Origin: Basidiobolus meristosporus CBS 931.73
Taxonomy: Eukaryota > Fungi > Basidiobolomycota
DNA: 64,000 nt
Reading direction: 5' to 3'
Assembly: GCA_002104905.1 (NCBI GenBank)
Contig: MCFE01000171.1
Coordinates: forward strand, 79,809-143,808
Positions 26,893 through 56,006 of this stretch are shown in pieces. A program made the position numbers and the translations under genes. Below the pieces are notes generated by a model, which was not told where the DNA came from, made no database searches, and saw only the letters and a list, made by a program, of their open reading frames with translations. Numbering within the stretch: the first letter of the stretch is position 1; each line of letters begins with the position of its first letter.

Positions 26893-29800
26893 TGTTGTAA
26901 GAGTCTTGGAGATATTGGAAGTGATTTGGAGAACAAGTAGATTATGTGGTTTTCACTTAATGATTTATTGAATGTAAAAGTGGTATTTATACTTTTACCT
27001 GGTCTTGGCATTACAAACACATAGAAGAGGTTAAGGAAGGTCCCAAGAACATGTGTGCAAAGTTTGGGGCTGTTTGGACAACTTTGAGAATTTTCATGTT
27101 CTGGGTACCTGGTATTTTGGTGAAAATATTCTAAGTAAATCCTGACAAGGAATTTGGTCAGTATTTTCTAGGATTTGAAGGTAATGATATAAGTGACTAA
27201 GTTAGGTGAATATTTAGGTGGAAATACAAATTTTTACAACACTCCCACTCAGCTAAATGTTCATACTGACTAGTCCTAATTTTGACCTAAGATATTCAAA
27301 CTTGTCTCTAGCTAATGGTTTGGTAAATATGTCTGCAATCATTTCATCTGTAGGACAGTAAACTAAGCTAACTAAGTTATTCTCTATAGCTTCACGTATG
27401 AAATGATGTCTAATATCTATGTGCTTGGTTCTAGCATGAAAAGTTGGATTTCTACCTAATTGTATACATCCTTGATTATCTTGAAATAAAGTAATAGGCG
27501 TTTTTTGACATAGGCCTAAATCTGTAAAGAGCTTTCTTAGCCACATTGCTTCTTTTGTAGCTTCACAGGCTGCCATATACTCTGCCTCTGTAGTAGAAAG
27601 TGCTATGGTTGGTTGCTTTCTTGAATTCCATGAAATTGCTCCTTTACAGTAAAGAAAGGTGTATCCTGTGGTGGATCTTCTGTCTTCTAAATTTTGTCCC
27701 CAATCAGCATCAGAGTATCCCACAAGATCCTGTTCTGAATCCTTATAAGTGTATCTTAAGCAGATATCAGCAGTTCCTTTTAGGTATCTAAAAATCCGCT
27801 TAACTGCTACAATATGATCAGATCCATAATTCTGATTATGTTGGCTGACAACTCCCACTGAATATGAGATATCTGGACGTGTTCCAAGCATGATATACAT
27901 CAGACTGCCGACCATAGATTGATAAGGAAAGTCAGGGCTTTCAGATGGCACCAAGCTCTCTTGATTTGGTTGAGTTTTGACCAAGTTAAGGTTTGTCTCC
28001 ATTGGGGTAGCTGCCGGTTTACAGTCTTCCATTTTGTACTTCTTTAGTATATCTTGAATATACTTGGATTGGCTTAGGGTAATAGTCTGGGTACTTCTGT
28101 CTATGGAGAACTTAATCCCTAAGTAGTAACTAAGTTCTCCTAGATCGGACATCTTGAACTCCTTAGATAGGCTGGATTTAGTCTCTTCCAATGTTTCTAG
28201 GTTATTGGCGGCTATAATAAGATCATCCACATATAGAGCTAATAGAACTGGACTTGCTCTATCTGGCTTATAGTATATACTATAGTCAGCATTACTCCTT
28301 TTGAAACTCATAGATTCCAAATAAGAATCTATCTTGCAATTGCAGGCTCTTGGTGATTGTTTGAGACCATATAGTGACTTTTTAAGCTTGCAGACCAAAT
28401 GGGGGTTATTTTGGTCAACAAACCCATCAGGCTGGTCCATATACACGTCCTCATCAAGTTCTCCATTCAAAAATGCAGTTTTTACATCCATTTGATGAAT
28501 AAAAAACTTATATTTGGCTGCAATAGCCAATATTAATCTGATGGAATTAAACTTGGCTACCGGTGCAAAGGTCTCAGTATAGTCAAGTCCTTTTGTTTGA
28601 GAGTATCCTTTGGCTACAAGTCTTGCTTTGTATCTTTCAATTGTGCCATCAGCCTTGTATTTTGTCTTGAAGACCCATCAGCATCCAATTGATTTTTGGT
28701 TGATTGGTAATTTGACTAAGTCCCAAGTTTGATTTTCCATCAGGGCCTGATATTCCTCAGTCATTGCAGATCTCCAAAACTTCGTCTGAGGGCTATTTAG
28801 GGCCTCTTTTACAGTCTGGGGTTCATCAATATGGACTGAATAGGCATAGGCTAAGTTTGTACCCTCATTGATATAGTAATTTGGGCTATTTCTTGTCCGA
28901 TTTGATCTCCGGGCATTTGATACTGGAATGATCACTTCTGGGATATTCCTGGGCACTGATTCTGGCTGAACCATGGTTGTAGAGTCCTCTGGAGTGAAAA
29001 AATTCTCATTGTTTTGCTCTGATTCAATCCTGACAATTGGTGGACTTGAGATCAAATTTTTGTCATCATCTGATGTCATTTTTTGTGAAAATTTTGAATT
29101 TTCATCAAACAACACATCCCTGGACTTGATCAGCTTTTTTGCTTTGGTATTGTAGAGTCTGTATGCCTTACTCTCATTGCAGTAGCCCAAAAATATGCAT
29201 TTTACACTTTTTGGCTCAAATTTTGACTGATTTCCGGCCAGTTTTTTGGCATATGCTGTACACCCAAATATTCTTAGATGTTCTGCACTTGGTCTGTATC
29301 CATACCATGCTTCAAATGGAGTAGAAACACGAAGTATTCTGTTATAACTCCTATTTTTAAGATATACAGCAGTGGCAACTGATTCCGCCCAAAAATCATA
29401 GGATAATTTTTGATCATGGATTATAGATCTTGCCATATCAATTATTGATCTGTTAGCTCGTTCTGGTACTCCATTTTGCTGTGGGGAGTATGGTACAGTA
29501 GTCTCTTGCTTTATCCCATGAATTTTGCAGAAGTGGATGAAGAGTTTTGAGGTATATTCTCCACCATTGTCAGAGCGTATTTTCTTGATTTTTTCACCAG
29601 TTTCTCTCTCCACCATGGCTTTAAACTCCCTGAACTTAGACAGAGCTTCTTCCTTTCTCTCCGTGAAGTAGACCCATGTGTATCTTGTATGATCATCAAT
29701 AAAAGTGATTAAATACTTCATCCCACCTAAGGATAAATTTTGCATAGGTCCACACAGATCTGAGTGAATTAGATCTAATTTTTTCTTAGTTTTGATTAAC

Positions 29801-31576
29801 CCAGAGCTCTTGAACGGTTGTCTAGCTTGTTTCCCATATATGCAGGCTTCACAGTGCTCCAAAATAGCTGGTGGATCAATTTTCACTCCAGAAATTAGCT
29901 GATCTTTGATCATTTTACGCAAATAATCAAAATTGATGTGTCCAAATCTCCTGTGCCAAAGCATTGGTGTTTCTTCATTTAAGTTACTTATATTGGCTTC
30001 CAAATATGATGGAATATAAGTCAACTTGTATAGGTTCTGATCTCTGATGCCCGAAGCAATATGGGCACCATTTTGATCACTGATCCTGCATCCAGAATTG
30101 TCAAAACTGAAACTGAGTCCTTCTGCTGTGGCCTTGCTTACAGAGAGTAGGTTCTTGGCTATTTCTGGTACATAGAGTACTTCTTTAAAGGTCAGTGTAT
30201 GGCTTCCTTCACTGCTTCTTAGGTTTACTTGGATAGTTCCTTCTCCCACTGCATCAAGTGTTCTATTGTCACCCATGAAAACCTTCTTAATTGGAATTTC
30301 TTGATATTGGGTAAAAAGTTCTTTTTGGTGTGTAAAGTGTTGAGAAGCTCCAGAGTCAATATACCACGTCTGAGAATCCTTGTTTGTGGTCATATTTAGT
30401 GCAGATATGAATAGTCTATCTTCAGTTGTTGCAGCATTTCCATATTCAGGCTTCTTTTTCTGATAATCTCTCTTTTTGAAACACCGGTCTGATGTGTGTC
30501 CTTTCCTTTTGCAGTAGTTGCAAAATAGGTTGCTGTTGCCTTTGTAGGGTCTTGGGTACCTCCTTTGTTGGTTATCATTGCTTATTAAAGCATTTTCTTC
30601 TTCCTTCTTATTGGTGCTTGATTTTCTTAATTCTTCATCCAGGAGCCTTCCATATACGTAATTTAAGGTCAAATCTTCAGTTCTGGACTCTAGGGCTGAT
30701 ACAAGGCCCTGAAACTCGTCTGTCAGGCTATTCAGGATGGTAACTATCACATCCTCATCAGTAGTTGGTACGCCCACAGATTCCATCTCATCTACCAGCA
30801 GGGTAATTCTGTTAATTAGATTTTTCATTTCTTCTCCTGGCAGCATCTTTGTAGTAAAGAATTTTCTTCTCAGATACATTTTCTTGGCAGCTGAACATGA
30901 CTGGTAGGTGTCTTCTAATGCCTTCCAGGCATTCTTTGCCGTTTTTGCTCTTGAGCATTGAATTAGCAATTTGTCCTTGACATTAAGGCAAATGCAGTTA
31001 AAGGCACTTTGTTCTTTCTTCTGGTACTTTAAGGCTTCCTCTCCCACGTTTTTAGGAGGGCATTCTTCTCCCATGACAATATCCCAAAGGCCTCTTTCTT
31101 GTAGCAGCATCTTCATCTTCACCTTCCACACTTGGTAGTTAGAGCCATCCAACTTTTCAGCAGAGGGAAAAATTCCAGTAATAGCAGTAGTAGACATTGC
31201 AGAGAGTGGCAGCTTGGGGCTCATAATCTGTTGTAAGAGTCTTGGAGATATTGGAAGTGATTTGGAGAACAAGTAGATTATGTGGTTTTCACTTAATGAT
31301 TTATTGAATGTAAAAGTGGTATTTATACTTTTACCTGGTCTTAGCATTACAAACACGTAGAATAGATTAAGGAAGGTCCCAAGAACATGTGTGCAAAGTT
31401 TGGGGCTGTTTGGACAACTTTGAGAATATTCATGTTCTGGGTACCTGGTATTTTGGTGAAAATATTCTAAGTAAATCCTGACAAGGAATTTGGTCAGTAT
31501 TCTCTAGGTTTGAAGGTGATGATCTAAGTGACTAAGTTAGGTGAATATTTAGGTGGAAATACGAATTTTCACAACA
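26893..31576 (-). mobile_element. Full-length Ty1/copia element B (4684 bp), defective
   Basis: LTRs 26893-27241 and 31229-31576, TSD AGTAC; same family as A. Confidence 0.97.
27253..31224 (-). pseudogene. copia B gag-pol with one nonsense codon at the start of RT (28678-28680)
   Basis: KSIGC* where A has KSIGCRW; integrase DDE intact. Confidence 0.93.
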
Positions 31577-31603
31577 AGTACAAGATTCAAGTAGAGCATT
31601 TTG

Positions 31604-34600
31604 TGTTGTAATTATTGAGTTGTCACCTAAATATTCATGCTAACTTAGTCACATAGATCTTATACTGTGATTAGCATTCTGTCCTGACCAGATTTCTTGT
31701 CAGGATTTACTTAAAATATTTTCACCAAATTGTCAGGTACCCAGATTATTATTTTTCTCAAAGTTGTCCAAAAGACCCCAAACTTTGCACATATATTCTT
31801 GGGACCTTCCTTAACAAACTCTACATGCTTGCTTTCTCTACTCTATCAAAAGTATATATACTATACTTTTGATCAATAAATCTACAAGTGAACAACATGT
31901 AAATCCTTGTGTTCTCCACATCACTTCCAATACTCCTCAGAATATTTCAACAGGTTATGAGCCCCAAGCTTGCTGTCCTCTTGGTGTCTACTTTGCCTTG
32001 GATCCTTTTCTGCTAGTCAGGAGAAAGACTTTCTGCACTATTGTCCTGCCAAAGTTAAAGATGACTACTGCTGCTATAAGGACTATGTTCATGAGGATAT
32101 TGCTGTAGAGAAGAAGGCCATGACTTCAAAAGGCTCATTTGGTAACTACTCAAGCTGGTTATGAAGGAAAGTCTATCAAGTTGACATGTTAACATGTCAA
32201 GAAATATAGTATATTGGTGCTCTACCAATACTGAAGAAAATTGCATAATTCCAGCAATTGAGGGTCCAGATCTACAATGAAATATATTGCTATATGTATT
32301 CATAAGACCTCAATTGACTGCTAGAAAAGCTTTTGGATAGGATATTATCCTGAATTGCAAAAAAAAATAGATCATCATTGAATGATTGCTGGAGGAGGAT
32401 TTTACCAAATCTGTTGCTGCTCAAGACAAGGCTGAGAGTGCAAATACTGGAGCTGTTAACTGCCATTTTGGACTACCTATTAGTGGGAAAAGATCTCAGA
32501 AACAAGCCCCTCAGTTGTAAGGATCTTGATGATATACAATACATATATATCTACCTGGAGTACCAATATGTACTACACAATCCAATGGAAGAATGCTATA
32601 TTTGTATCAAGCGTTTTGATACTGAAACTAATGTACAAGGAGCCAAATATGGAGCTGTTAGATGTGCTATCCCTCAGTTTAAGTCTCAAAACAGTGGGAG
32701 AAAGTTTTATACAAATCTAGCAAAATCAACTCAAGAAGATTCTACCGCCAGCTAAAGGAGTGAAGCATATAATTGAAAGTCTGATTGGAGTATACAACTA
32801 AGCAACAGTTGGTAAGTACACAGCTAAGAGCCACTTAGAAGATAACATAGTATTTTATACTTGTTACATATATATATTTTATTACAGTGAGAGAAAACAC
32901 TTGGTGATATTCAACTTCTCTGAATCAGATCAGAAAAATTTTGATTAATCAAATCACTGCCAAGCTCCACAACTCAAGATGCTAATATATTACAGTCTGA
33001 TACCAAAGTAATGATGAAGCTAACTATTAAATGCAGTTAATTTGATCAAATCTGGTCAACTCTATCAAAAGTTATGACTGTTCTAAGTGGATGCTGATTT
33101 TGATTATTTCACTCTCAAAAAGTCAGATATTATGGAACAATGCTGTCATGGAGACTCTTGTGCTCAAAAACACCATGGTCCTACCTGCAAGGAAGTCCAG
33201 AACCACCCCACAAAAGGAATTATCCCTGGGCCATCTGCTGAAAAAGAAAAGAAGAAAAAATAGAAAATTTTACTACTGCAAACTATGGTACATCCCAAAT
33301 GGAGCCAAAACATATGTAGGACATATTTGGACTATCTGGCAATGCAAATATGCTCTATGGAGCCTCTTGTAAAAAGTTCTCAAGCCACAAATCCCAGAAG
33401 AGCCTTGAAACCTCAACAGGATCTGTCAGATTTTGTAGTATATATTGGAACAGATTATTTAATGCAGCAGTCTTGATGTCTGCTGTCTATGGAGCTGAAA
33501 GAAAAAGGTGTAAGGATCAACCAAGATGGTCTTTATGGATTCTGCAGACACTGAGAAGATAAGTTAGCCTTTCAAACCAACCTCAAGGCTGAAAATAACC
33601 ATCAGGAGAAAAAGGATAATCAAAGCCCTTGCTAAGCAGAATCTCACTTCTGATAAAACGCCAATCTCTATTCTACAAGCATATTCTGCTAAGACAAAAG
33701 CAGCTGTATCAGTCCAAATAAGTAGAAGCACTCTAAGAATAGCTACCAAACAACCTATGGTGTTGTCCAATACCAAACTGGGTAAATCAAGAAGCAAATG
33801 GACTTTGAATCTACCACAAATGAAGTAATCAGTCCTAAGAAAGTTATTGCTACTTAAAGAAGACAAAGATGACCATTCTAGATCATTTTTGTGGATCTGA
33901 ATCACTAAACAGATGTGATTCAAGTGGGAGCAGGCCATCCCAGCTTAGAGTGGAGCAAAAACCTTGTTTTTTTGGCCATGTTGGCATGTGCTGCTGTGCC
34001 AGGAAATGAGGATAATCCAGTTCAGGTGTAAATGACAAAACCTTAACTTGGCCCAATATAGGTCATTTCTTTTACCTCATACAGAGTCTATGTGTTGGAA
34101 GCAACTGTCCCTGAGCCAAATATGGACATACAGTGAAGTTGTGCAATTGAGTTAGACTTTTGCATGGTGTTGTGCCTCAACATTTAAAATTTGGCCAATT
34201 TCACTCCATTAGAAAATTTAGCACCCTAACTGATTTTCCCTAACCCAAACATAACTGATCCCTGTTATGATTTATTTTATCACTTCTCAGAATCTATTTT
34301 TAGCTGTCACACCTGATTGATTTTCATGTGGTCATTACGTACTCAAATGATCTGCTAAGCCTTTCCAAGTGATTAGTCATCTGAGATTTATCCAACCACT
34401 TAGCATTTGCCAAGACATCAGCTGATTAATGATGCAATTTTTCATTTATCTTATGCACCTATCAACACCCCAACAGATTTCAATTAGTCCAGTCTCTTGG
34501 TGCTTACTAATGCAACTCAATCAGAAAAGTATAAATAAAGTTTACTGAACCTTTTGGTTTAGTGTGTGTCTCAACACAATTAAGAATTCAACAAATCCAT

Positions 34601-35589
34601 TCTAGTTTCTACCCAAGCTTAGCATATCTAGCACTCTCAAGAACACCAAGCCTAGCCTGCATAGCAAACCTACTCTGTTACCTTTGTAGCCCAACTCAGC
34701 TATATATAAGACCAATATTAGACCAGAACCTCTCTGCTAATGTTTCTGACACTCTTGACAATTCTAAGATTCTGCACTTAGTTGTCACTTAGGTTCAGTT
34801 AACTCATTCAAGAGTTTTATTACACTTTTCTCTTGGATACAACACCAAGAAATAAGGAAACTCCAGATTTGTTGTAAATGACTAAACCTTAGTTTGACCA
34901 AAAGTGGGTCAATTTTGCTCAAATAAGAGGCATTAGATAGCCCAGAGGCTATATATTATTATTACAATCTGTCAATTAGACTCAGCGTATCTATCAAGTC
35001 CGTACAACTGATCAAAGTTGACAATTAGTATTATGATCAGATCATTCCAATCTTTAGGCATACCACCAAGTAGAGATACACATTGAATTCCAAGTTACTT
35101 GTTCAATTAGGTTGAACACAGGTGCATATACTGTTGGATAATATATTAGTCCAGTATGCAACACAGCTAAGTCTTATATGCTTATTACAGATTGCACACT
35201 CTCAATATGTATTTATTACTAATATTTTGTTGAGTGGGAGTGTTGTAATTGTTGAGTTGTCACCTAAATATTCATGCTAACTTAGTCACATAGATTTCAT
35301 ACTGTGATTAGCATTCTGTCCTGACCAGATTTCTTGTCAGGATTTACTTAGAATATTTTCACCAAATTGTCAGGTACCCAGATTATTATTTTTCTCAAAG
35401 TTGTCCAAAAGACCCCAAACTTTGCACATATATTCTTGGGACCTTCCTTAACAAACTCTTCACATTTGCTTTCTCTACTCTATCAAAGGTATAAATTCTA
35501 TACTTTTAATTAATAAATCTACAAGTGAATTACATGTAAATTCTTTAGTTCTCCACATCACTTTCAATACTCCTCAGAATATTGCAACA
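31604..35589 (+). mobile_element. Degenerate copia element C (LTR family 2)
   Basis: LTRs 31604-31952 and 35241-35589, TSD TTTTG, PBS GGTTATGAGCCC, PPT TGAGTGGGAG; interior decayed and shortened. Confidence 0.9.
34168..34844 (+). repeat. Probable solo LTR (family 4) nested in copia C
   Basis: TGTTG...CAACA ends, TATATAA box, homologous to 11309-11829; flanks CATGG/CCAAG are not a clean TSD. Confidence 0.5.
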
Positions 35590-36249
35590 TTTTGAAGCTC
35601 CACTAGACTTCCATATCCCAGAGTGCTCAGCAACTGGTTCCATACCAGGAGTATTTTGGAAACCTTGCCAGTTGGGAATGACAGACCTTCTGGAAGGCAA
35701 AGGCCCTTTTGTTCTGGCAAATACCAGGCACATTGTGTGAAGTTTCAAGCACTATCTGACATTGATGGTAACATTGAATGTTTTAGTGGCCATTTGCAGG
35801 AGGTGGGCCTGACAATGCACTCTGGGTAAAGAATCATCCAGAATGCAGTAGAGGGGAGAGATATCTGGCAGACTAAGCTTATGTTGGAGAGGATTGTTAG
35901 AGATTAGGATGTATTATAGCTCTTAGGAAGCCAAGGAATGGAGTGCCTAGCAGGAAGCAGAAGCCCTACAATGAGATATTTAATCATATAAAAGCAAGAG
36001 TAGAGCATACGTTTGGATATCTAGAGAGATTTAGCATATTAGCTGTCAGGAAAGTCATATACAGGAGAAAACAGCAGAATAGGTAAAATAGTTAGGATAC
36101 TTATTAATGCATAGTATATTCAAATAAGAATACATTCACTGAGAGAAATGTGTCTGGAGCATTATGAAGAGTAGATAATGCAAGAAAAGCACTGTTCTGA
36201 GCAGCATAAGTAAGATTGAGTAAAAACACCAGTAACTGTATCCAACACT

Positions 36250-38961: not shown

Positions 38962-40895
38962 AGTAAGATGCATCCCAAACAATTTTTGCAAGTGGTTGTA
39001 GTAATTCTTCAAGGCTCCCATTACCAATATTAATGGAAACACACCACTTTTCTAGCCACAACATCACATTACTCACAAACAGATGGATTACTGGGCTCAT
39101 TTGGCTCTATAAAGTGTCCTTGGCACTTTTTTCTACAGGTGTTGTCTCATTGCATCTTGCAATTTTGTTGGACTCAAGCAAGGTACTGTTGTTAGAGGAG
39201 ATAGGCTCACAATATATTAGTGAGTCTTCTTTTTCAGAGCTATTGCTCTTTCTGCCATATTCAGAAGGCTGAGGTGAGCCCAAAGGCACTACAGACTCAC
39301 ATGACTTAGTTTGCACACGGTGACAGGTACAGCTAGGTGCTGTTATATAAGTATCAAGTGGCTGGCAGGATGTAGTTGGTACAGAAGTACCTGATCAATT
39401 GTCAAACATGACTTGTGTGGCAAAACACTGGCTGTGAGCCTTTTAATACTTCCTATGCTGTCTGTGCCCTTCATGGCTGGAAGGCTTGTTACAATAGCCA
39501 CAATGTGTCAGCTTGTTCATAGTGCTGGATCAATCTAGCACTCTAAGGCACTATCTGGCACTATCCTTTTTATCACAATGCCAGTGGTAGGATATAGTTA
39601 CTGGTAACTATACTCAATCTTGCTTATGTTGCTCATATTAGTGCTTTCCTTGCTATATCTACTCTTCATATTAGACTTGTTCCATCATACCGTGCCAGGG
39701 CGCGTGGCGCAATCCGCGGTTGCAAAGAACGATCGGGCACGATATTATAGCTACCAGAAGGCAGGATTGTTCTTGGACAATTTTGCACTATGCGGGACAA
39801 TCTCGCACACTATGGCACAATCTGACACGATGAGGTTGGCGCGGATGATCGCGCCAACTCGTAATGCTTGCATCACATGCGCGATTGGATACCGCTATAA
39901 TGGCAGGTAAAATCCGGTATTTGGATATGTTTCTTTAATGTAAATGGAAATAAATGTGTATCACACTATAAACTACACTGATACTTACCATTTTGGTTAC
40001 CCTCACTCCAATTGGACGGTATCTCAGTGGTTAATTGGTCCAAAAGTATCCTGAAGCTGGCAGCCCCCAATTGGCTCATTGACTACTGAAAAAGCTACCT
40101 GATTTGCCATCAAATATCCCATTTTGCCCATTGAGCAAGTAAATCCCTGATCCTAGTGATTGGGCAAGGTGTCATAGCTAGCATGCAAGCGATCGTGTAG
40201 GTGCAAAACAGATCCAATAGCTGCACTGGTATTACAGATGACGTATATATATGCAGGGTGTTTATTTATAAGGGTTCTGTCTCAAATGTGAGACGACCTT
40301 GATATTACTTATATCAAAAATTTGATGATCACTGATTTGCGATGGCTCAATTCGGATCGCAAAAAAAAAGGGTTGTTGGGATCATTACGAATGTGAGTGA
40401 TTCAAAGCAATCGCATTATCTTCTCCTGGGTTTTTTTCTCACAGGGATTACTACTGAAGCATTTGGTAGTGACTCACTTTGCACACCTATACTACTTCCT
40501 GGCTGACTATCATCTTGGCTACTTGTGTATTTGTAGTCAGTATTTTGCCTCCTAGTTGATGAGTGCGATGCTGCAGCTTGGCCACGCTGAATCGCTCCAA
40601 CTGAACCAACTGAACCAACTGAACCGGCCTGTAGTGCCACGCACTGACGCGTTCTTTTACTTGCCAAGGGCTCCGGTGGTTGAGTCACTTCATGTTGGTC
40701 ATCATCAGTCAGTTCACCAGAAGTAACTCGCTGATGGTCAGGCAAAACAGCACACGCAGGCGCGCCTTGACGCGTTGAGATGGCCCTTGGCTGAGTTCGA
40801 TGTGATGCCGCATGTTGACGTGACTTGGTCCGCTCCAATGGACTTGTGTCTAACTGAGCAGTTTGGTGAGTTCTGGTAGTTTTGCTCTGAAGCGC

Positions 40896-41966
40896 TGTAG
40901 TGGGGTGACAGTGACACCCACTGACAAATGTGCTCATTCCCTTATTTTCTACTTCCCTATATCTCTACTACACTTATTTTAGTTTTATCCCATTTGTCTT
41001 ACCCAATCAGTACTATCCCATAAGCCGGTTGACTATCACACCTGCTTACCTTATTGCATAAGTTACCCCTCACTTTATGTAAGATTACTAGCTATAAGTA
41101 CTTCTAAATTAGGCAAGTACCCGCGCCAGTGCCCGTGACACATGATCAGCCCGTGTGACCATCCCTACCATTTCCATACCATATATGGTATCCCCATGTT
41201 ACACAGGTTTCAGAATACTGATTCCTGATTGGTTGGATGTGCTGTGCCTCTTAGAACCTTCCGGCACCTACTTAGAACATTCTTAGGTCATTCTGATGTC
41301 ATTAAGATTTCTATTGATATCCGGAACCTTCTGGAACACCATGATTAGTAATCACTTAGCCAGTAAGAAAAGTATATAAGGGAGGCTATCCCTCAACAAT
41401 AAATCATCATCCCTTTTATCAATATACCGACTTGTTGATTAGTGTGATCACTGCTACCTGCTGCTACCTGAACTTCCAACCCCAGACCACAGGACACTCC
41501 CAGGAAACCGCGCTGACAGCCAACTGACCTTGGAGGCACTACTTGTGAGGAATACTCAGAGTAGGTATCTTTTATTATATTTGGTTCTTTCCCAAGTTTG
41601 TTCTTGTACAGGCAAAGATACTTTTCTGTCTTTGTAACTATTGACCACAGCTGCATTCTTATCAAGTCCCTGCTGGTGGAGTTTACAGTTGTTTTGACTT
41701 TGGAAGCTTTAGTACATTGTCATCTCAAAGGACACTGAACCCAGCACATACTTTTGTTAAGACGCCAACTAAGTTGGGGATTGTAGCTCAATAGTTTTCC
41801 CTTGACAAGCTTGTGGCTTTATTCCCCTTCACATTAGATTAGAGACAGAACCCAAGTATTCCTAGCAAGCTTTTGCCAGAGGTTATCGCACCCAGTGAAC
41901 ACCCCACACACAAAACACTTGAGAAGTGTTGGACGTATCTCTCCCTTGGACTTATACACCACCACA
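40896..41966 (+). repeat. Solo LTR family 5 (1071 bp), TSD GCGC/GCAC
   Basis: TGTAGTGG...CCACCACA, TATATAA followed by AATAAA near 41370-41400. Confidence 0.92.
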
Positions 41967-42118
41967 GCACGCGCGTTGACCCGACGGGCGTTGACTCAAT
42001 GCGCGTTGACTTGACGCAGGGCGTTCTGGTAAAGGGTGTTGGCGTGGTCTGGACTGACATGCGCCGGCGAGCTGTGGTTGCAAGAGATGGTAGGGCATCC
42101 AGCGAGGCGTGCTGGCGC

Positions 42119-43190
42119 TGTGGTGGTGTATAGGTCTAAGGGAGAGATATGTCCAACACTTCTCAAGTGTTTTGTGTGTGGGGTGTTCACTGGGTGCGAT
42201 AACCTCTGGCAAAAGCTTGCTAGGAATACTTGGGTTCTGTCTCTAATCTAATGTGAAGGGGAATAAAGCCACAAGCTTGTCAAGGGAAAACTATTGAGCT
42301 ACAATTCCCAACTTAGTTGGCGTCTTAACAAAAGTATGTGCTGGGTTCAGCGTCCTTTGAGATGACAATGTACTAAAGCTTCCAAAGTCAAAACAACTGT
42401 AAACTCCACCAGCAGGGACTTGATAAGAATGCAGCTTTGGTCAATAGTTACAAAGACAGAAAAGTATCTTTGCCTGTACAAGAACAAACTTGGGAAAGAA
42501 TCAAATATAATAAAAGATACCTACTCTGAGTATTCCTCACAAGTAGTGCCTCCAAGGTCAGTTGGCTGTCAGCACGGTTTCCTGGGAGTGTCCTGTGGTC
42601 TAGGGTTGGAAGTTCAGGTAGCAGCAGGTAGCAGTGATCACACTAATCAACAAGTTGGTATATTGATAAAAGGGATGATGATTTATTGTTGAGGGATAGC
42701 CTCCCTTATATACTTTTCTTCACTGGCTAAGTGATTACTAATCATGGTGTTCCAGAAGGTTCCGGAGTTCAATAGAAATCTTAATGACATCAGAATGACC
42801 TAAGAATGTTCTAAGTAGGTGCCGGAAGGTTCTAAGAGGCACAGCACATCCAACCAATCAGGAATCAGTATTCTGAAACCTGTGTAACATGGGGATACCA
42901 TATATGGTATGGAAATGGTAGGGATGGTCACACGGGTTGATCATGTGTCACGGGTACTGGCGCGGGTACTTGCCTAATATAGAAGCACTTGTAACTAGTA
43001 ATCTTACATAAAGTGAGGGGTAACTTATGCAATAAGGTAAGCAGGTGTGATAGTCAACCGGCTTATGGGATAGTACTGATTGGGTAAGACAAATGGGATA
43101 AAACTAAAATAAGTGTAGTAGAGATATAGGGAAGTAGAAAATAAGGGAATGAGCACATCTGTTAGTGGGTGTCACTGTCACCCCACTACA
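42119..43190 (-). repeat. Solo LTR family 5 (1072 bp), inverted, TSD GCGC/GCGC
   Basis: Reverse complement of 40896-41966; GCGC at 42115 and 43191. Confidence 0.93.
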
Positions 43191-44197
43191 GCGCAATCTG
43201 GACAATGTTGCTCGCGGTCTGTATTCTGCCTCCTGAAGCTCACCATCTGATTCCTCAAGGTATTCACTTACCCTCTGTCTGATACTTTGGAGCTGTTGCC
43301 TGGATGAGTCCTGTGTATATTGCTCTCGGAAGCCACTTAGCTCTACTAATATATCACGTAGTACATTAGTCATTTGAGGCAAAAACTCATTCAAAATCTC
43401 TTTGGTTCCCAAAGTTGAGGCACGAACGGACGCATCCGGCCCGTACTGTGCAAATTGCGCGCAAAATTGTTCCCGCGCGGCTTCCTTGTCAAATCCCCTC
43501 ACTCTCAGCTCATTCTTGATTTCAATACTTGTCTTGTTATATATCTTTTTACATACATTGGCTGGCATCTTGATGTAGAACTCATGCCACAGCTTTCTAC
43601 TCAAATTCTTCCATCCTTGTCAACTCTCTGAGGTATCTAGTTCTGCTAGATTAATCAGTAGTGCCCAAATATCTGTATGAAGGCTCATCATAGACACTTG
43701 GGCCATACTAAAATCATTTGGCGAGAACTCGAACGGATCCAACATCGACTTTTCCGGTCCGAACCGCGCTTGTGAGCTGGGGGATGGGTTTTGTCTGGGT
43801 TGTACTAAAGATGAGTTGAGGCTTGGTATGGGGACCATAGCAACGGATTTGGATACTTATACAGCAGTATATTGGCATCAACCTGGTCTTATATGAAATA
43901 TATATGAAAACTAAAGTGATTGTTGAATTTTCCATATATTATGCATGATGCATCTCGGATTGCATTGACACGGATCAGATCACATCAATTGCAGATTTCC
44001 TATTTGATTATAGACCTATGATTAAAGCATCAATAAAAGTACCAAGGCATTGTTTGCGGATGATTTTTGCAACATAATGATGGGATACATGGCAATTGAT
44101 GGAGATTTAACCATAATGTGTTAAAAATCAGATAAATAACGCAGATCGCGCCAAATCAATTCAAACCGCCTCCATACAATCATCCATCAATTTTAAT

Positions 44198-45082
44198 ATG
44201 ACTTACTCATCTGAATGGTCTTTTCTCATCAATCCCATCACTACCACTGGATTTCCTTTTGACACACTGGAGGAGATCTATTCCAAGTACTGTGGACCAT
44301 CAACCCCAATCTACTCAAGGAGATCCCTTGTTAAGCTTCTCTGCAATTACAAGAACTATTGCCCTACAAGGTTTCATCCCACCATCCATGGCAACAAAAG
44401 TCCTAGAAGCTTTCATTCCCAGCAGACAGCAATGGAGAACCATCTTGCAGAGGGTATGAATGACTTAGAGCAAGCTTGGAATACTAGGTTCAGAAGCTCC
44501 AATAGACTTCCATATCCCAGAGTGTTCAGCAACAGGTTCCATATCAGGAGTATTTTGGATACCTTCCCAGTGAGGATTAACAGACCTTCTAGAGGGCAGA
44601 GGCACTTTTATTCTCGCAAGTACAAGGCACACTGTGTGAAGTTTCAAGCACTGTCTGACATTGAGGGTAACATCATCTGGTTTAGTGGGCCATTTGCTGG
44701 AAGTAGTCATGACAAAGCACTCTGGGTAGAGAATCATCCTGAATTCAGTAGAGGGGAGAAATGTATGGCAGACTTGGCCTATATAGGAGAGGATTGTCAG
44801 AGATTAGGATGTATTACAGCTTATAGGAAGCCAAGGAATGTTGTGCTTAGCAGGAAGCAGAAGCTCTACAATGAGATATTTAATCATTTCAGAGTAAGGG
44901 TAGAGCACACATTTGGATATCTGAAGAGATTCAGCATATTGGCAGGTAAATACAGAGGAAAGTCATATATAGGAGAAAACAGCAGAATAGGTAAAATAGT
45001 TAAGATACTTATCAATGCACAGTATGTTCATACAAGAAGACATCCACTGAGAGAAATGTGTCTGGAGCATTATGAAGAGTAA
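44198..45082 (+). CDS. DDE_Tnp_4 (PIF/Harbinger/ISL2-type) transposase, 294 aa, open frame; true start may lie upstream
   Basis: ILDTFPVRINRP, FYSRKYKAHCVKFQ, GSSHD, MADLAYIG, RVRVEHTFGYLKRFSIL. Confidence 0.9.
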   Translation: MTYSSEWSFLINPITTTGFPFDTLEEIYSKYCGPSTPIYSRRSLVKLLCNYKNYCPTRFHPTIHGNKSPRSFHSQQTAMENHLAEGMNDLEQAWNTRFRSSNRLPYPRVFSNRFHIRSILDTFPVRINRPSRGQRHFYSRKYKAHCVKFQALSDIEGNIIWFSGPFAGSSHDKALWVENHPEFSRGEKCMADLAYIGEDCQRLGCITAYRKPRNVVLSRKQKLYNEIFNHFRVRVEHTFGYLKRFSILAGKYRGKSYIGENSRIGKIVKILINAQYVHTRRHPLREMCLEHYEE

Positions 45083-45169
45083 ATAAAGCAAGGAAAGCAC
45101 TATTCTGAGCAACATAAGTAAGATTGAGTAAAATTACCAGTAACTGTATCATACCACTGGCATCATGGT

Positions 45170-45265
45170 AGAAATTATAGTGCCAGATAGTGCCGTAGAG
45201 TGCCAGATCGATCCGGCACTATAAACCGGCTGGCACTATGTGGCACTATCCAACGGAACAAGTCT
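45170..45265. promoter_or_regulatory. Subterminal AGTGCC/GGCACT repeat cluster (putative transposase-binding sites)
   Basis: Three AGTGCC followed by three inverted GGCACT next to the right TIR; also in H4, H5 and the fold-back MITE. Confidence 0.6.
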
Positions 45266-46569
45266 ATTGCTCCAGACACATTTCTCTGAGTGGATGTCTT
45301 CTTGTATGAATATACTGTGCATTAATAAGTATATTAGCTATTTTACCTATTCTGCTGTTTTCTCCCACATACAACTTTCCTCTGTATTTACCAGCCAATA
45401 TGCTGAATCTCTTCAGAAATCCAAATGTATGCTCTACCCTCACTCTGACATGATTAAATATTTCATTGTAGAGTGTCTGCTTCCTGCTATGCACACCATT
45501 CCTTGGCTTCCTATATGCTGTACTATATCCTAACCTCTGACAATCCTCTTCTATATGAGCTAAGTCTGCCATACATTTCTCCCCTTTGCCAAGTTCAGGA
45601 TGATTCTCTACCCAGAGTGCTTTGTCATGCCTACTTCCAGCAAATGGCCCACTAAACCAGATGATGTTACCCTCAATGTCAGACAGTGATTGAAACTTCA
45701 CAGTGTGCCTTGTACTTGCCAGAATAAAAGTGCCTCTGCCCTCTAGAAGTTCTGTTAATCCTCACTGGGAAGGTATCCAAAATACTCCTGATATGGAACC
45801 TGTTGCTGAACCCTCTGGGATGTGGAAGTCTATTGGAGCATCTGAGCCAAGTATTCCAAGCTTGCTCTAAGTCATTCATTCCTTCTGCAAGGTGGTTCTC
45901 CATTGCTGTCAGCTGGGAATGAAAGCTTCTAGGACTTTTGCTACCATGGATGGTGGGATGAAGCCTTGTGGGGCAATAGTTTCTGTAATAGCAGAGATGC
46001 TCAACAAGGGATCCCCTTATATAGATTGAGGTAGATGGTCCACTGTACTTGGTATAGGTCTCCTCTACTGTGTTGAAAGGAGATCCAGTGGTGGTGATGG
46101 GATTGATGAGAAAAGACCATTCAGATGAGTAAGTCATATCAAAATTGATAGGTGCTTGGGCTGAGGTGAATTCAATTAATTTGGGGCAATCAGCTTTATT
46201 TATCTGATTTCCATTCATTATGATTAAATATCCATCAACTGCCATGTATCCCATCATTAGGTTGCAAAAATCATCCTCAAACAATGACTTGGTACTTTTA
46301 TTGATGCTTTACTCTCAAGTTTATAATCAAATTGAAAATCTGCAATTGGTGTGATCCAATCTGTGCCAATGGAAACCCAGATGCATCATGCATTATATAA
46401 GGAAAACTCAGCAATCACATTAGTTTTCATTTATATTTCAAATAAGACCGGGTAGATGCCAATACAATACTGTATATGCATCCAAATTCATCACCATGGT
46501 CCCTATACCAAGTCTCAACTGATGTTTAGTACAACCCAGACAAAACACATCCCCAGCTCACAAGCACAG

Positions 46570-48714: not shown

Positions 48715-51664
48715 GTGGTCTGGACCTGAGAAGTCATGTTGGATCAATTTGAGTTCTTACCAAATGATTTTGGTATGGCCCAAGTGCCTATGTTGAGCCT
48801 TCATATATATATATTTGGACACTACTCATTAAGCTAGCAGAACTAGATACCTCAGAGACTCAACAGGCATGGAAAAACCTCAGTGGAAAGCCTTGGCATG
48901 AGTTCTACATCAAGATGCCAGTGGATGTATGTAAGAAGATATAAAAAGAGAGTATTGAAATCAAGAATGAGCTGAGAGTGAGGGGATTTGATGAGGATGC
49001 CATGCAGGAACAACTTTACACGCAATTTGCCCAGCACAGGCCAGACAGATTGGTTTGTGCCTCTACTATGGGAACCAAAGAGATTTTGAATGAGTTTTTG
49101 CCTCGACTGACTAATGGATTATGTGATATATTAGTAGAGTTAAGTGGCCTCCAAGAGCAATACACACAGGACTCTTCCAGGCAACTGTTCCAGAGTATCA
49201 AACAGAGGGTAAGTGATTACCTTGAGGAATCAGAAGGTGAGCTTCAAGAGGAGGAATACAGACCGCAAGCAACAGCATCTTGATCACACCAGCATGCCTT
49301 GCTGGATTCCTTACCATCCCTTGCAACTTCAGTGTGCCAGTTCATGTTAGTCCAAACTATGCCAGCACCCTTCACAAGAGCACACCACATTGAGTCAACA
49401 CATGTCAGGTCAATAAACACGCTTCAGAGCAAAACCACCAGAGCTTGCCAAACTGGTAATTTAGACACAAGTCCATTGGAGCAAACCAAGTTACATTAGC
49501 AAGTGTCATCACATCAAACTCAGCCAAGGGCAATGCCAGGGCATCAAGTTGCACTTGCATGTGCTATTACACCTGACCATCAGCAAGTTTCTTCTGGTGA
49601 ACTGACTGGTGATGACCCACATGAAGTGCCTCCACCACCAGAGCCTTTGGTAAGTAAAAAGCACTTCAGCACATAGCACCACAGGCCAGCTTAGTGACAT
49701 TATCCCAAGCAATCAAGCATTGCCAAACTGCAGCATTGCACTTGTCAACTAAGAGGCAAAATACTTACTATAAGTACAGAAGTAGCCAAGAGGATAGTCA
49801 ACCAGTAGGTAACTTAGGTGTGCAAAGTGAATCCTTACCAAATACCTCAGTAGTAGTCCCTGTGAGAAAAAACCTAGGAGAAGATGATGTAATTGCATGG
49901 AATTAGTATTATTTGTCCTGATCTAAGCCATGTACTTTTGTTACAATACAAATGGAGCCATTGCAAATCAGTGATCACTAAATTTTTGATACAAGCAATA
50001 TCAAGATTGTCTCACATTTGAAAGAGAACCCCTATAAATAAACACCCTGCATATATATACATCATCTGTTACACCAGTGCAGCCATTTAATCTGTATTGC
50101 ACCTATTCAATTGGCTACATTATAGCTATGATACCTTGTCCAATCTTTAAGATCAGGGATTTATAGCTCAATGGGCAAAATAGGATATTTGATGGCAAAT
50201 CAGGTAGCTTGTTTAGTAGTCAATGAGCCAAATGGGGGCTGCCAGCTGCAGGATACTTTTGGACTAGTCAACCATGGAGATATCATCCAATTGGAGTGAT
50301 GGTAACCAAAATGGCAAGTATCAGTGTAGCTTATGTTATGATATGCATTTATTTACATTTACATTAGAGAAACATATTCAAATACTGTATTTTACCTACC
50401 ATATTAGCAATATCCACCTGTCCATGTGATGCAAACATTACAAGCTGGCACAATCATCTGTACCAACCTCATTGTGTAAGATTGCGCAATAATGTGTGAG
50501 AACATTGCACATGGTGCAAAATTGTACAAGAGCAATTCTGCCTACTGGTAGCTATAATATTGTGCCTGATTGTTCTTAGAGACTGCAGATTGCGCCACTT
50601 GCCCTGGCACAGTACAATAGAACAAGTCTAATGCTTTTATATCACTTTTCTGTCAATACCAATGCAATGTTAGAACAATCTTGTATTTGCAACATTGCAC
50701 CTAATAAGCCATTATAGTAAAACTTCTATTTTACCAGATTCTTAGGTGCTCCAAGTGTCTCCAAAGGCATATGGGTGTCTTTTGCACTATCCCAAAAAGC
50801 TCCTTGATGACAGGTCAGAGGAGTAACTGCTGATAGTAGGTGCAGCAAGTAATAGCCAATCAATAGAGGGAAAATGTCACTGATAGAAGGAATGATTTAT
50901 CAATGAGGGGTTGAGTTGCCTAAGATGCTTTTTCTGATTGCTAAGTAATTAGTAATGGCAAGGTTGTAGAGAATCCAGACATCAGTGAAAATCTTGATGA
51001 GATCACTCTGAGTTAAAAATACTCCCAGAGGGTCCTGGAAAGTGCTAAAAGGCACAGCACATCCTGCCAATTGTGGACCAGTAGTGCAAAGCCTGTGAAA
51101 CATAGAGATACCGCATGCTGTATTAAATGCTTGGGACAGTAAGACTGACTTAGGTGATGTATCATGGGTATTTATGCAGGTAGTTGCCTAATGTAGATAC
51201 ATATATGCATTAGAAAGCTGAATAACATCTGGGATAACTAATGCTAATAACTAAGCAGGGTTGACATCATATGGGCATAATGCTAATGGTATGGGCAGAG
51301 AAGAATGGAATCTCACTGATAAGAAAAAATATTGAAAAGTTCACCATGATAGCTGAATGGATAAGCTTGTTTGTGGGAAGTAAGTTTACCCTGCCACACT
51401 GCAAGCTGAACATAATGCTCAGACAGATGGGAATGTAGCAAACATAGTACCTTTAGTTGCAGACCAGCAAGTGGCTGCAATAACATGACCAGCACCCATA
51501 TTAGCAAGCATGTTGTTAGCTGATGCCAAAGCATTAATGAAGAAATTAAATGCAGTGGCTTTTAGGATAGATGTAACAGCCCAGGGAAGGCAGGATATAA
51601 TATAGCAACAGGGTAAGCAGATAAAATGTGTAATGCATTTACTATCCTAGGTAGAGAAAACATT

Positions 51665-52398
51665 AGACTTGTTCCGTTGGATAGTGCCACATTGAGCCAT
51701 GAGTGCCACATGATGCCATAGTGTGCCAGAGAGGCCAAGTGAGCCTATACTTGGCCACAGAGTGTGAAACATGTATCTGCATCTTCATGCAAAGCAGCCC
51801 CTGTGTTTCACCTATGATGCAGGAGAAAATCCATTTTTTGACGTTTTTTTGTGAATCAATGTTATGCAGGATGTGTAAGAGCACAGAAGAACTGAAGACA
51901 TGCATCAGGTACTCCATACCCATGGCACTCTGAATCTAGCTCCTGTGGCTTGTAACATGTCACAACAATGCATGGCACTATCTTGGTCCACTGGTACTAT
52001 CTGGCACTATATTTAATTATTAGCCCTAAAGTAAGATCTATACAAAGCACTTATAGTGCCAGATAGTACCAGTGGACCAAGATAGTGCCATGCATTGTTG
52101 TGACTTGTTACAAGCCACAGGAGCTAGATTCAGAGTGCCATGGGTATTAAGTACCAAATGCATATCTGCAATCCTTTTGTGCTCTTACACATCCTGCACA
52201 ACATTGACCTAAAAAAAAAGGTCAAAAAATGGATTTTCTCCAACACAATTGGTGAAACACAGGGGCTGCTTTGCATGAAGATGCAGATCTATGTTTCACA
52301 CACTGTGGCCAGGTAGAGGCTCACTTGGCCTCCCTGGCACACTATGGCATCATTTGGCACTCATGGCTCAATGTGGCACTATCCAACGGAACAAGTCT
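51665..52398. mobile_element. 734-bp fold-back MITE with PHIS right-end termini
   Basis: 347-bp inverted arms (51665-52011, 52052-52398), 40-bp spacer; ends AGACTTGTTCCGTTGGATAGTGCCACAT; flanks ATT/AAT. Confidence 0.9.
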
Positions 52399-53002
52399 AA
52401 TATCTTTGTTGCAAAGAAGGCACTCAAATTACTCAATGTTGCAGCCATAAATTCAGCCATTACCCTGTGTAATAGTAAAGATATATCTTACAGTATTTGA
52501 AGCACAAAACAGTGCCCAAAGACAAAACCCACTGAAGTTCCTATCACAGCATAGGAGGGAGAAACTGTGGTTTTTATACCAAAGCTGCAAAATCCAAAGA
52601 CATTTAAGATTTGTGAAGGTGTTGAGTGCAATGATGAAGAGTGGGCTTATATTCAAGAGGCTCTACAAAGTCTGTTCCACCATCACCTTAAGGCTGGCAT
52701 ACTATGGGACCATCAGGAACATAAGGCAAAGCAGAATGTGCTTGACTTATTCCATGAGCATTATTCTGGAATCAAACAAGCAAATAGATTTTGGGCCAGC
52801 ATTGATACACTTAGATAGTAGACTTGTTCTGTTGGATAGTGCAACATAGTGCCAGCCTGTTTATAGTGCCAGATCAATCCAGCACCCTAAGGCACTATCT
52901 GGCACTATAATTTCTACCATGATGCCAGTGGTATGATACAGTTACTGGTAATTTTACTCAATCTTACTTATGTTGCTCAGAATAGTGCTTTACTTGCCTT
53001 AT

Positions 53003-53887
53003 TTACTCTTCAAAATGCTCCAGACACATTTCTCTCAATGGATGTCTTCTTGTATGAGCATACTGTGCATTAATAAGTATCTTAACTATTTTACCTATTC
53101 AGCTGTTTTCACCTATATATGACTTTCCTCTGCATTTACCTGCCAATATGCTGAATCTCTTCAGATATCCAAATGTGTGCTCTACCCTCACTCTGAAATG
53201 ATTAAATATCTCATTGTAGAGCTTCTGCTTCCTGCTAAGCACACCATTGCTTGGCTTCCTATACGCTGTAATACATCCTAATCTCTGACAATCCTCTCCT
53301 GTATAGGCTAAGTCTGCCATACATTTCTCCCCTCTACAGAATTCAGGATGATTCTCTACCCAGAGTGCTTAGTCATGCCTATTTCAAGCAAATGGCCCAC
53401 TAAACCAGATGATGTTACCCTCAATGTCAGACAGTGCTTGAAACTTCACACAGTGTGCCTTGTACTTGCCTGAATAAAAGTGCCTCTGCCCTCTAGAAGT
53501 TCTGTTAATCCTCACTGGGAAGGTACCCAAAATACTCCTGATATGGAACCTGTTGCTGAACACTCTGGGATATGGAGGTCTATTGGAGCTTCTGAACCTA
53601 GTATTCTGAGCTTGCTCTAAGTCATTCATACACTCTGCAAGGTGGTTCTCCATTGCTGTCAGCTGGGAATGACAGCTTCTAGGACATTTGTTACCATGGA
53701 TGGTGGGATGAAACCTTGTAGGGCAATAGTTCTTGTAATAGCAGAGAAGCTTGACAAGGGTTCTCCTTGAGTAGATTGGGGTTGATGGTCCGCAGTACTT
53801 GGAATAGATCTCCTCTAGTGTGTCAAAAGGAAATTCAGTGGTAGTGATGGGATTGGTGAGAAAAGACCATTCAGATGAGTAAGTCAT
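53003..53887 (-). pseudogene. H4 transposase with two nonsense codons
   Basis: Same 885-nt length as H2; GPFA* and GENS* stops. Confidence 0.88.
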
Positions 53888-54246
53888 ATTAAAATTGGTG
53901 GATGATTGGATGGAGGCAGTTTGAATCAATTTAGCACAATCTGCGTTATTTATCTGATTTTTAATGTATTATGATTAAATCTTCATCAATTGCCATGGAT
54001 CTTATTGTTATGTTGCAAAAATCATCCGCAAACAATGCCTTGGTACTTTTGGTGATGCTTTACTCATAGGTCTATAATCAAATAGGAAATCTGCAATTGA
54101 TGTGATCTGATCCATGTCAATGCAATCCAAGATGCATCATGCATAATATACGGAAAATTTAACAATCACATTAGTTTTCATATATATTTCATATAAGACA
54201 AGGTTGATGCCAATATACTGCTGTATAAGTTTCCAAATCTGTTGCT

Positions 54247-55496
54247 ATGGTCCCCATACCAAGTCTCAACTCATCTTTAGTACAGCCCAGACACAACCCA
54301 TCCCCCAGCTCACAAGCATGGTCTGGACCGGAAAAGTTAATGTTGGATCTGTTTGAGTTCTTGCCAAATTATATTAGTATGGCCCAAGTGTCTATGATGA
54401 GCCTTCACACAGATATTTGGGCACTACTGATTAATCTAGCAGAAATAGATACCTCAGAGAGTTGACAAAGATGGAAGAATCTGAGTAGAAAGCTGTGGCA
54501 TGAGTTCCACATCAAGATGCCAGCCAATGTATGTAAGAAGATATATAACAAGACAAGTATTGAAATCAAGAATGCGCTGACAGTGAGGGGATTTGATGAA
54601 GAAGCCATGCAGGAACAATTTCACATGCAATTTGCATGGTACGGGACAGACACGTCCATTTGTGCCTCAACTTTGGGAACCAAAGAGATTTTGTATGAGT
54701 TTTTGCCTGAAATGACTAATGTACTACGTGATATAATAGTAGAGCTAAGTGGCTTCCAAGAGCAATATACACAGGACTCATCCAGGCAACAGCTTCAGAG
54801 TATCAGATAGAGGCTAAGTGAATACCTTGACAAATCATATGGTGAGCTTCAGGAGGAAGAATACAGACCGCAAGCAACATTGTCCTGATGGTGTCAGCAT
54901 GCCTTGCTGAATTCCTTACCATCTCTTTCAACTACAGCATGCCAGTGCACGTCAGTCCAGACTATGCCAACACCTGTTACCAGAACGCCCCACATTGGGT
55001 CAACATGCGTCAGGTCAATGCACACACTTCAGAGCAAAACTACCAGAACTTGCCAAACTGCTCATTTACACACATAAGTCCATTGGAGCAGACCAAGTTA
55101 TGTTAACATGCAGCATCACATCAAACTCAGCCAAGGGCCATCTCAACACGTCAAGTTGCACCTGCATGTGCCTTTTTGCCTGACCATCAGCAAGCTACTT
55201 CTGGTGAACTGACTGATGAAGACCAACATGAAGTGCCTCAACCACTAGAGCCCTTGGCAAGTAAAATTACACATCAGCGCATGGGACTCCAGGCAGGTTC
55301 AGTTGGTTCAGGTGGAGCAATTCAGCATGGCCAAGCTGCAGCATTGCACTCATCAACTAGGAGGCAAAATACTGACTACTAATACACAAGTAGCCAAGAT
55401 GATAGTCAGCCAGGAAGTAGTATAGGTGTGCAAAGTGAGTCACTTCCAAATGCTTCAGTAATAATCCCTGTGAGAAAGAAACCCAGGAGAAGATAA
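54247..55496 (+). pseudogene. H4 ORF2 (no LTR insertions; stops and indels)
   Basis: Colinear with reconstructed H2 ORF2 from MVPIPS to PVRKKPRRR*. Confidence 0.82.
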
Positions 55497-56006
55497 TGCA
55501 ATTGCTTTGAATTGCTATTATTTGTAAAGATCCCATCATCCCATTTTTTTTGCAATCCAAATTGAGCCATTGCAAATCAGTGATCATCAAATTTTTGATA
55601 TAAGTAATATCAAGGTTGTCTCACATCTGAGACTGAACCCCTATAAATAAACACCCTGCATATATATATCATCTGTAATACCAGTGCAGCTATTGGATCT
55701 GTGTTGCACCTACCTGATTGCTTGCGTGCTAGTTATGACACCTTGTCCAATCACTAGGATCAGGGATTTACTTGCTCAATGGGCAAAATGGGATATTTGT
55801 CAGCAAATCACGTAGCTTGTTTAGTAATCAATGAGCCAATTGGGGGCTGCCAGCTTCAGGATACTTTTGACCCAATTAACCACTGCGATACCGTCCAATT
55901 GGAGTGATGGTAACCAAAATGGTAAGTTTCAGTATAGTTTATAGTGTGATACACATTTATTTCCATTTACATTAGAGAAACATATCCAAATACTGTATTT
56001 TACCTA

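Follow-up and report, generated by a model that had tools for sequence, protein, structure and literature searches.

A DNA transposon family of probable Pangu/Harbinger2 type with a 3-bp A-N-T target site duplication in Basidiobolus meristosporus

We analysed a stretch of 64,000 nucleotides from the fungus Basidiobolus meristosporus CBS 931.73 (assembly GCA_002104905.1, contig MCFE01000171.1, positions 79,809 to 143,808 of the forward strand; hereafter the window), which contains several copies of a two-gene transposon. The copies probably represent a cut-and-paste DNA transposon family within the PHIS (PIF/Harbinger-ISL2EU-Spy) superfamily, in the group that Han et al. (2015) named Pangu and that corresponds to Harbinger2 in Repbase. 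The full element is about 3.42 kb long (3418-3442 bp), with 11-bp terminal inverted repeats (TIRs) of the sequence AGACTTGTTCC, two divergent genes and ATAGTGCC/GGCACTAT repeats near the ends. The termini, a 3-bp duplication of A-N-T composition, an insertion with paralogous empty sites, the intact DDE triad of the transposase, the gene layout and the conservation of the subterminal repeats were observed directly, and the putative membership of the Pangu/Harbinger2 group was judged by diagnostic features only. Within this already described type the elements form a new and well delimited family.

Copies of the family in the window

The window was compared with itself, and an uninterrupted copy at 52819-56240 (H-B) was taken as the family reference. 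The self-comparison revealed a repeat-dense region from about 24 kb to the end of the window, in which the five copies of a ~3.4-kb element reported in an initial annotation of this DNA were all recovered (H-A to H-E), together with a short end fragment and a foldback derivative. Two of the copies are full-length, a third is nearly so and was interrupted by later insertions, and two are fragmentary; the end fragment measures 120 bp and the foldback 734 bp. Allowing at most one mismatch, AGACTTGTTCC was found 9 times in the window against 1.1 expected matches, and each match is an element terminus. The copies are:

39673..45265, + strand: H-A, full-length, inside the older H-C; 5593 bp, or 3442 bp minus two solo long terminal repeats (LTRs)
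52820..56237, - strand: H-B, full-length at 3418 bp; neither gene intact; flanked by AGT...AAT
48716..50629, - strand: left part of H-C, family positions 1-1922; ended at 48716 by LTR sequences
45269..46566, - strand: middle part of H-C, family positions 1923-3225; adjoins the H-A insertion
39505..39669, - strand: part of H-C on the right-hand side of H-A; its final ~30 bp, with the right terminus, missing; another repeat abuts
58297..59035, - strand: H-D, 739-bp right-end fragment; flank AAT
24930-25378, 26054-26889 and 35594-36242, + strand: H-E, three internal pieces with retrotransposon insertions between them
56502..56622, - strand: left-end fragment of 120 bp, 77-80% identical to the family; terminus AGAATTGTTCC, flank AGT
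51665..52398, no strand assigned: foldback non-autonomous derivative of 734 bp; ~355-bp arms 92% complementary; flanks ATT...AAT

When each LTR and one copy of its flank are removed, H-A is colinear with H-B. The order of events is that H-C was inserted, H-A then entered H-C, two LTR retrotransposons entered H-A and these were finally reduced to solo LTRs. The copies other than H-A are decayed, chiefly by CpG-to-TpG/CpA changes. None of the copies in the window is autonomous, as the transposase gene of H-A is open but its second gene (ORF2, from open reading frame) is interrupted by two solo LTRs and by a stop codon. No termini were found at the three pieces of H-E (24930..36242). Both arms of the foldback start with the right-end terminus of the family. 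The sequence AGGCTTGTTAC at 39482 was considered as a right end of H-C with a flank other than A-N-T and was rejected, given that the same sequence is present in an unrelated repeat copy at 18364-18420.

Target site duplication

The 3 bp adjoining nine termini, read inward, are ATT at five ends, AAT at two, AGT at one and ACT at one, all of them conforming to A-N-T. Because H-B and H-C have their left flank in common, these represent eight independent ends and not nine. At the A-N-T frequency seen in the window (0.087), all eight independent ends would show the pattern by chance with a probability of about 3e-9. Besides a clean ATT/ATT pair and a clean AGT/AGT pair, the initial annotation had described the other ends as flanked by AAT; ATT flanks occur there too, and not AAT alone.

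The ATT/ATT pair is borne out by H-A, which carries ATT on either side. Read in the orientation of H-C, the site of this insertion is GGAGC-AAT-[H-A]-AAT-ATGAAG, and the equivalent empty site is GGAGC-ATT-ATGAAG in H-A, H-D and H-E and GGAGC-ATT-TTGAAG in H-B. Since these paralogous copies act as empty sites, the H-A insertion amounts to the element plus exactly 3 bp. The middle base is A on both sides in H-C and T in the paralogues, which a single earlier substitution in H-C explains. The AGT/AGT pair did not hold in the same way: AGT at 52817-52819 adjoins the right end of H-B, but the left terminus of H-B (56237) is followed by AAT, and the second AGT (56623-56625) borders the separate 120-bp left-end fragment (77-80% similar), which lies 385 bp further out. 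The two AGT triplets form a pair only if this outer end fragment is the partner end of H-B.

A complete related element, L003, was found on a metagenome contig in ENA (positions 255-3281), with a perfect 10-bp TIR AACGTTGGAC and an ATT/ATT duplication, and could be used together with H-A to examine other placements of the element boundary. Neither a 2-bp AT duplication, which would make TAGAC the terminus, nor a TANTA-like duplication of 5 bp gave a direct repeat for H-A or L003. The same result was obtained for a TWA duplication with a GACTTG terminus, for which H-A reads TTA on one side and TAT on the other. This bears on whether the family could be canonical PIF/Harbinger, with a TWA duplication, a Myb/SANT partner and ends misplaced by one base, a reading that would account for the shared Pfam domain and the layout of two genes. 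Moving the boundary by one or two bases abolishes the direct repeat of H-A, and the shift fails for L003 as well. Canonical elements should also have a partner with a Myb, SANT or MADF domain, and no match to any of these was found by Pfam in the ORF2 pieces; the weak likeness to winged-helix and trihelix domains (Z 4.0-5.6, noise level) that could be cited in favour of this reading concerns the ORF2 of a related element, not that of the window. We therefore consider a canonical PIF/Harbinger element very improbable.

Structure of copy H-A

The features of H-A are as follows (TSD, target site duplication).

39670..39672, no strand: left TSD copy ATT; size of exactly 3 bp from the paralogous empty sites
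39673..39683, + strand: left TIR AGACTTGTTCC, 11 bp
40416..43838, - strand: ORF2 (putative partner gene), 423 codons; broken by two solo LTRs and by TGA at 43620-43622
40896..41966, + strand: nested solo LTR 1 (TG...CA); flanks GCGC/GCAC; foreign to the transposon
42119..43190, - strand: nested solo LTR 2, in inverse orientation to LTR 1; flanks GCGC/GCGC; foreign to the transposon
43839..44197, no strand: intergenic spacer, 359 bp between the divergent genes
44198..45082, + strand: transposase ORF, 294 aa, intact, single exon; D121/D192/E236
45179..45249, no strand: subterminal repeats, (A)TAGTGCC in three direct units at intervals of ~10 bp and, after them, GGCACTAT in three inverted units
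45255..45265, - strand: right TIR, GGAACAAGTCT on the + strand
45266..45268, no strand: right TSD copy ATT

The two genes were previously described as lying head-to-head about 360 bp apart, in agreement with the ATG of ORF2 at 43838 (- strand) and that of the transposase at 44198 (+ strand), with 359 bp between them. This spacer is presumably a bidirectional promoter. The AGTGCC subterminal repeats noted before are likewise present: three direct units of the ATAGTGCC type followed by three inverted GGCACTAT units occupy the last ~90 bp, and single units are also found just inside both termini. The repeats are presumed to be protein-binding sites. In L001, an element with a transposase 61% identical to that of H-A, the ATAGTGCC/GGCACTAT array of the 3' end is conserved and the 3' untranslated region next to it is not, which suggests such a function.

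The two solo LTRs within ORF2 belong to one family (98% alike); they lie in opposite orientation 148 bp apart and jointly resemble a 2.3-kb palindrome. Each is bordered by a 4-bp duplication of the GCGC type, and further copies of this LTR family are present at 46570-48712 and 56814-57357.

Transposase and ORF2

The transposase matches Pfam DDE_Tnp_4 (E=1.3e-23), with no second domain above threshold. A word search with the transposase alone gave 2 matches, and with an alignment 19 relatives. Look-ups of the exact sequences of the transposase and of three host proteins returned no record. In a comparison of 16 relatives, D121, D192 and N225 were invariant and E236 nearly so. Because P0001, a protein of the same length (294 aa) from a Logan assembly, aligns with it end to end at 61% identity, the transposase ORF is regarded as complete and as a single exon. 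The similarity to bacterial transposases is distant: NCBIfam IS5_4 gave 49.6 bits (E=3e-13), a weak match below its cut-off of 140, and IS5-type genes of bacterial plasmids share about 30% identity with the transposase over the catalytic core.

The N-terminal half of ORF2 is predicted to be helical, and the C-terminal half is of low complexity and ends in a basic KKPRRR tail. At the codon that is TGA in H-A, H-B also has TGA and H-C has CAA, after which the frame continues; an intron is thus not needed as an explanation of the TGA. Given that the window copies are split by the stop codon, ORF2 was searched in pieces, and no Pfam match was obtained (including Myb, SANT, MADF, THAP and YqaJ). 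The longest piece encoded in the window (141 aa) had no match among 1.84 billion representative proteins, an Atlas feature search returned weak unrelated rows only, and the single-sequence fold of the ORF2 piece was too poor for use (predicted local distance difference test score, pLDDT, 48).

Related elements

A divergent ORF2 without Pfam match lies upstream of the transposase in L003, L004, L006, L007/L008 and L009, the related elements whose contigs are long enough. The ORF2s of L003, L004, L006 and L009 make up a small orphan family (P0020-P0026), to which L003 contributes a protein of 337 aa (669-1682, minus strand). The N-terminal domain of a related-element ORF2 was modelled with a pLDDT of 68; Foldseek returned nothing at E<=0.001 and the best VIA-align score was Z 5.6, within noise, with winged-helix and trihelix DNA-binding domains among the best rows (Z 4.0-5.6). 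As to termini, L009 has the TIR AGAGTTGTGCACCA with flanks ATT and AAT, and L007 has the TIR AGAGATGTGCG with a flank of the ATT type. Convincing termini were not found for L004, and scans of metagenomes for more complete relatives yielded five short contigs, none of them with ends.

Abundance and insertion sites

Logan contigs from two runs of one sample were placed on H-B at a likeness of at least 85%. Out of 1.76 million contigs about 17,700 fell on this copy, with some 80-100 contig variants per position, which indicated that the family is very abundant in the genome; no copy number was derived from these figures. Just beyond 52819, outside the right terminus, 29 contigs of one run and 23 of the other turn to unlike sequence. 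The consensus of the outside flank is A and then T/A, before a T that still fits, i.e. A-W-T. Agreement between the flanks is low (0.39-0.41), indicating many different insertion sites. A further 19 Logan contigs branch at 52854 into the foldback sequence, and the foldback is therefore considered a separate family. The earlier proposal that the transposon has been active in this fungus is supported by the copy inside a copy, by the non-autonomous derivatives and by the ~17,700 Logan contigs of one run on one copy. The stretch was not found in any RNA run.

H-B and H-C are not independent copies. Over 260 bp of flank and the first ~280 bp of the element they are 97-99% identical, compared with 71-90% for the remainder, and this difference indicates that the block was copied recently between the two loci, by conversion or template switching. 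The shared block measures 540 bp (55960-56499 versus 50350-50890). On another reading the copies did not arise by transposition but from a single locus, through segmental duplication or gene conversion, and the common flank and left end of H-B and H-C are in line with this. The flanks of the remaining ends are however unrelated, H-A lies inside H-C with a 3-bp duplication, dozens of contigs have different flanks at the same terminus, and foldback derivatives have only their termini in common with the family. Duplication of a single locus is for these reasons hardly credible as the origin of the copies.

The sequence that received the right end of H-B (52567-52818) is itself a repeat, from which 37-44 Logan contigs diverge after 52804. 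An 83-aa ORF within it had no Pfam match.

Assignment to the Pangu/Harbinger2 group

Han et al. (2015) use the composition of the target duplication to distinguish groups within the PHIS superfamily (PMC4482050). Pangu elements have a 5'-ANT-3' duplication, confirmed with paralogous empty sites, and a TIR of 11-40 bp that usually starts with AG or GG; the autonomous ones average 3487 bp and encode a DDE transposase with no further domain and a second ORF without known motif (PMC4482050). The definition agrees with the statement in the initial annotation that an ANT duplication is described for Pangu. Hosts of the group include two ascomycetes and three basidiomycetes, and Table S3 of that study lists Pangu families of comparable size from Tremella, Melampsora, Puccinia, Tuber and Talaromyces, with Pangu_Tmes (3280 bp, ORFs of 322/398 aa), Pangu-1/2_MLP, Pangu-1/2/3_Tmel and Pangu_Tsti as fungal examples (PMC4482050). 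Pangu was equated with Harbinger2 of Repbase by Kojima (2025; PMC12730594).

The window family resembles this group in its 3-bp A-N-T duplication, 11-bp TIR with AG start, length of ~3.4 kb, DDE_Tnp_4 transposase without extra domains, motif-less ORF2 of ~400 aa and fungal host. It differs in that none of the families in Table S3 agrees with it in both sizes and TIR length, that its transposase (294 aa) is at the short end of the range, and that it is extremely abundant with a transposase ORF almost free of CpG.

The other groups fit less well. Canonical PIF/Harbinger elements (Harbinger3_DR, PIF, Ping/Pong) share with the window family the superfamily, the DDE fold family, two genes, subterminal motifs and derivatives of the miniature inverted-repeat type. 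In these elements both genes are needed for transposition and the partner binds the subterminal motifs (PMC9710019). Their target duplication is however TAA/TTA, in contrast to the ATT, AAT, AGT and ACT flanks of the window family; their partner is a Myb/SANT/MADF protein, of which nothing was detectable in the window ORF2 pieces; and their transposases usually have 400-500 aa with an N-terminal helix-turn-helix, compared with 294 aa here. The bacterial IS5 family has a DDE core distantly similar to the window transposase, and an ANT target was also noted for IS5 relatives by Han et al. (PMC4482050), but IS5 elements are prokaryotic, with one gene in ~1 kb and no partner ORF, whereas the window element is eukaryotic and has two genes. 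ISL2EU, Spy and Nuwa have transposases of the DDE_Tnp_4 type as well. ISL2EU has a 2-bp AT duplication, a THAP domain in the transposase and a YqaJ ORF2, whereas a 2-bp reading fails in H-A and L003 and no THAP or YqaJ match was found. Spy elements have a single gene, make no duplication and lie between AAA and TTT, unlike the window family with its 3-bp duplication and two genes. Nuwa I/II have a CWG or C|TNA|G duplication and a Myb partner, neither of which is seen in the window family.

Several points weigh against the assignment. Two of the window elements with both ends, the foldback (ATT/AAT) and H-B (AGT/AAT), differ in the middle base of their flanks, and although later mutation in these old copies can explain the mismatch, this is not proven. 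In L008, a near-identical twin of L007, the opposite end is flanked by CAT. The window ORF2 could not be related to the ORF2s of the related elements, for which BLASTP gave no match and hhalign E=0.39, and the role of ORF2 as a partner is suggested from its position only. Clade membership, finally, was judged on diagnostic features only.

A rival reading is a separate undescribed PHIS lineage, which would have reached the A-N-T target independently and stand outside Pangu/Harbinger2. An unusually short transposase, the mere 19 relatives in the word search, all of them unnamed, and the absence of any relative of ORF2 among the 1.84 billion representatives are all in line with such a lineage. 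On the other hand, the groups are defined by the composition of the duplication, the window family agrees with all other Pangu descriptors too, and the Pangu families of Table S3, basidiomycetes included, have transposases of 216-334 aa and ORF2s of 170-592 aa that lack known motifs (PMC4482050). A separate lineage is accordingly unlikely. The alternative offered by the initial annotation, a Pangu-like or an undescribed PHIS lineage, can be narrowed to its first half, in that every Pangu descriptor is matched and an undescribed lineage is not needed.

CpG content of the two genes

The transposase ORF contains 0-2 CpGs in each of the five copies (observed/expected 0.00-0.05), H-A having 1 CpG in 885 bp. 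In H-A the CpG-poor tract extends from 44168 to 45193, i.e. the transposase ORF and ~110 bp downstream, and holds a single CpG. By contrast, ORF2 of H-A contains 58 CpGs (observed/expected 0.76), compared with 11, 4 and 0 in older copies. More generally, ORF2, the spacer and the ends are rich in CpG in young copies, and the CpG content falls with age. When the transposase codons were resampled synonymously, using the codon usage of three neighbouring host genes, 50 +/- 5 CpGs were predicted, and the lowest count in 2000 trials was 34, against the 1 observed. Arginine is encoded by AGA/AGG in 27/28 cases.

Young copies retain CpG in ORF2 and the ends, so that simple decay of the master lineage cannot account for this pattern. 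The same split was found in L001 (61% protein identity), with 1 CpG in the ORF, flanks of 0.5-1.0 and a CpG-poor tract at L001:173-1176, which points to long-term selection rather than decay of a single copy. In more distant relatives CpG is normal or high in both genes. It is conceivable, though we put it forward as a doubtful suggestion, that this Pangu sublineage carries a built-in answer to CpG methylation by keeping its transposase ORF nearly free of CpG.

Other features of the window

The repeat-poor left end of the window contains host genes for a Gti1/Pac2 (WOPR) regulator, a PAS-domain protein and a protein kinase (324-1199, 3651-4616 and 6343-7656). The Gti1/Pac2 gene is in keeping with a fungal host; the Atlas clusters nearest to it are basidiomycete, which is no more than a lead. 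CpG observed/expected is 0.82 at this host-gene end and 0.32 in the whole window. A copia-type LTR retrotransposon is present in two copies (13165-17783 and 26893-31511) that are 98% alike and in inverted orientation, one of them with an open 1246-aa gag-pol frame (13206-16946) containing RVT_2, rve and gag domains.

Proposed mechanism and significance

The transposition of the family would begin with binding of the subterminal repeats by the partner and/or the transposase, the identity of the binding protein being suggested by analogy with Harbinger3_DR. The partner protein of Harbinger3_DR binds a 9-bp subterminal motif and is needed for entry of the transposase into the nucleus (PMC9710019). 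A corresponding role may be envisaged for ORF2, with whose basic KKPRRR tail nuclear import would fit. The DDE site would then cleave at the element termini, and insertion at 5'-A-N-T-3' by a 3-nt staggered cut followed by repair would produce the 3-bp duplication.

For annotation, the result means that an abundant DNA transposon of a genome rich in transposable elements can be filed as Pangu/Harbinger2, and not as "unknown" or as classic Harbinger, and the window supplies clean reference features in the form of termini, target, gene models and a foldback derivative. The CpG-free transposase beside a CpG-rich partner is one feature that may be of interest to specialists in transposon silencing; if the suggested answer to methylation is true, the transposase gene would not be silenced or mutated via CpG methylation, or the CpG-rich ORF2 would be a methylation-sensitive switch. 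We know of no functional study of the Pangu group so far. The window family, with its short and intact transposase, the conserved 8-bp repeats near its ends and a partner of unrecognised fold, offers a defined system for asking what this partner does.

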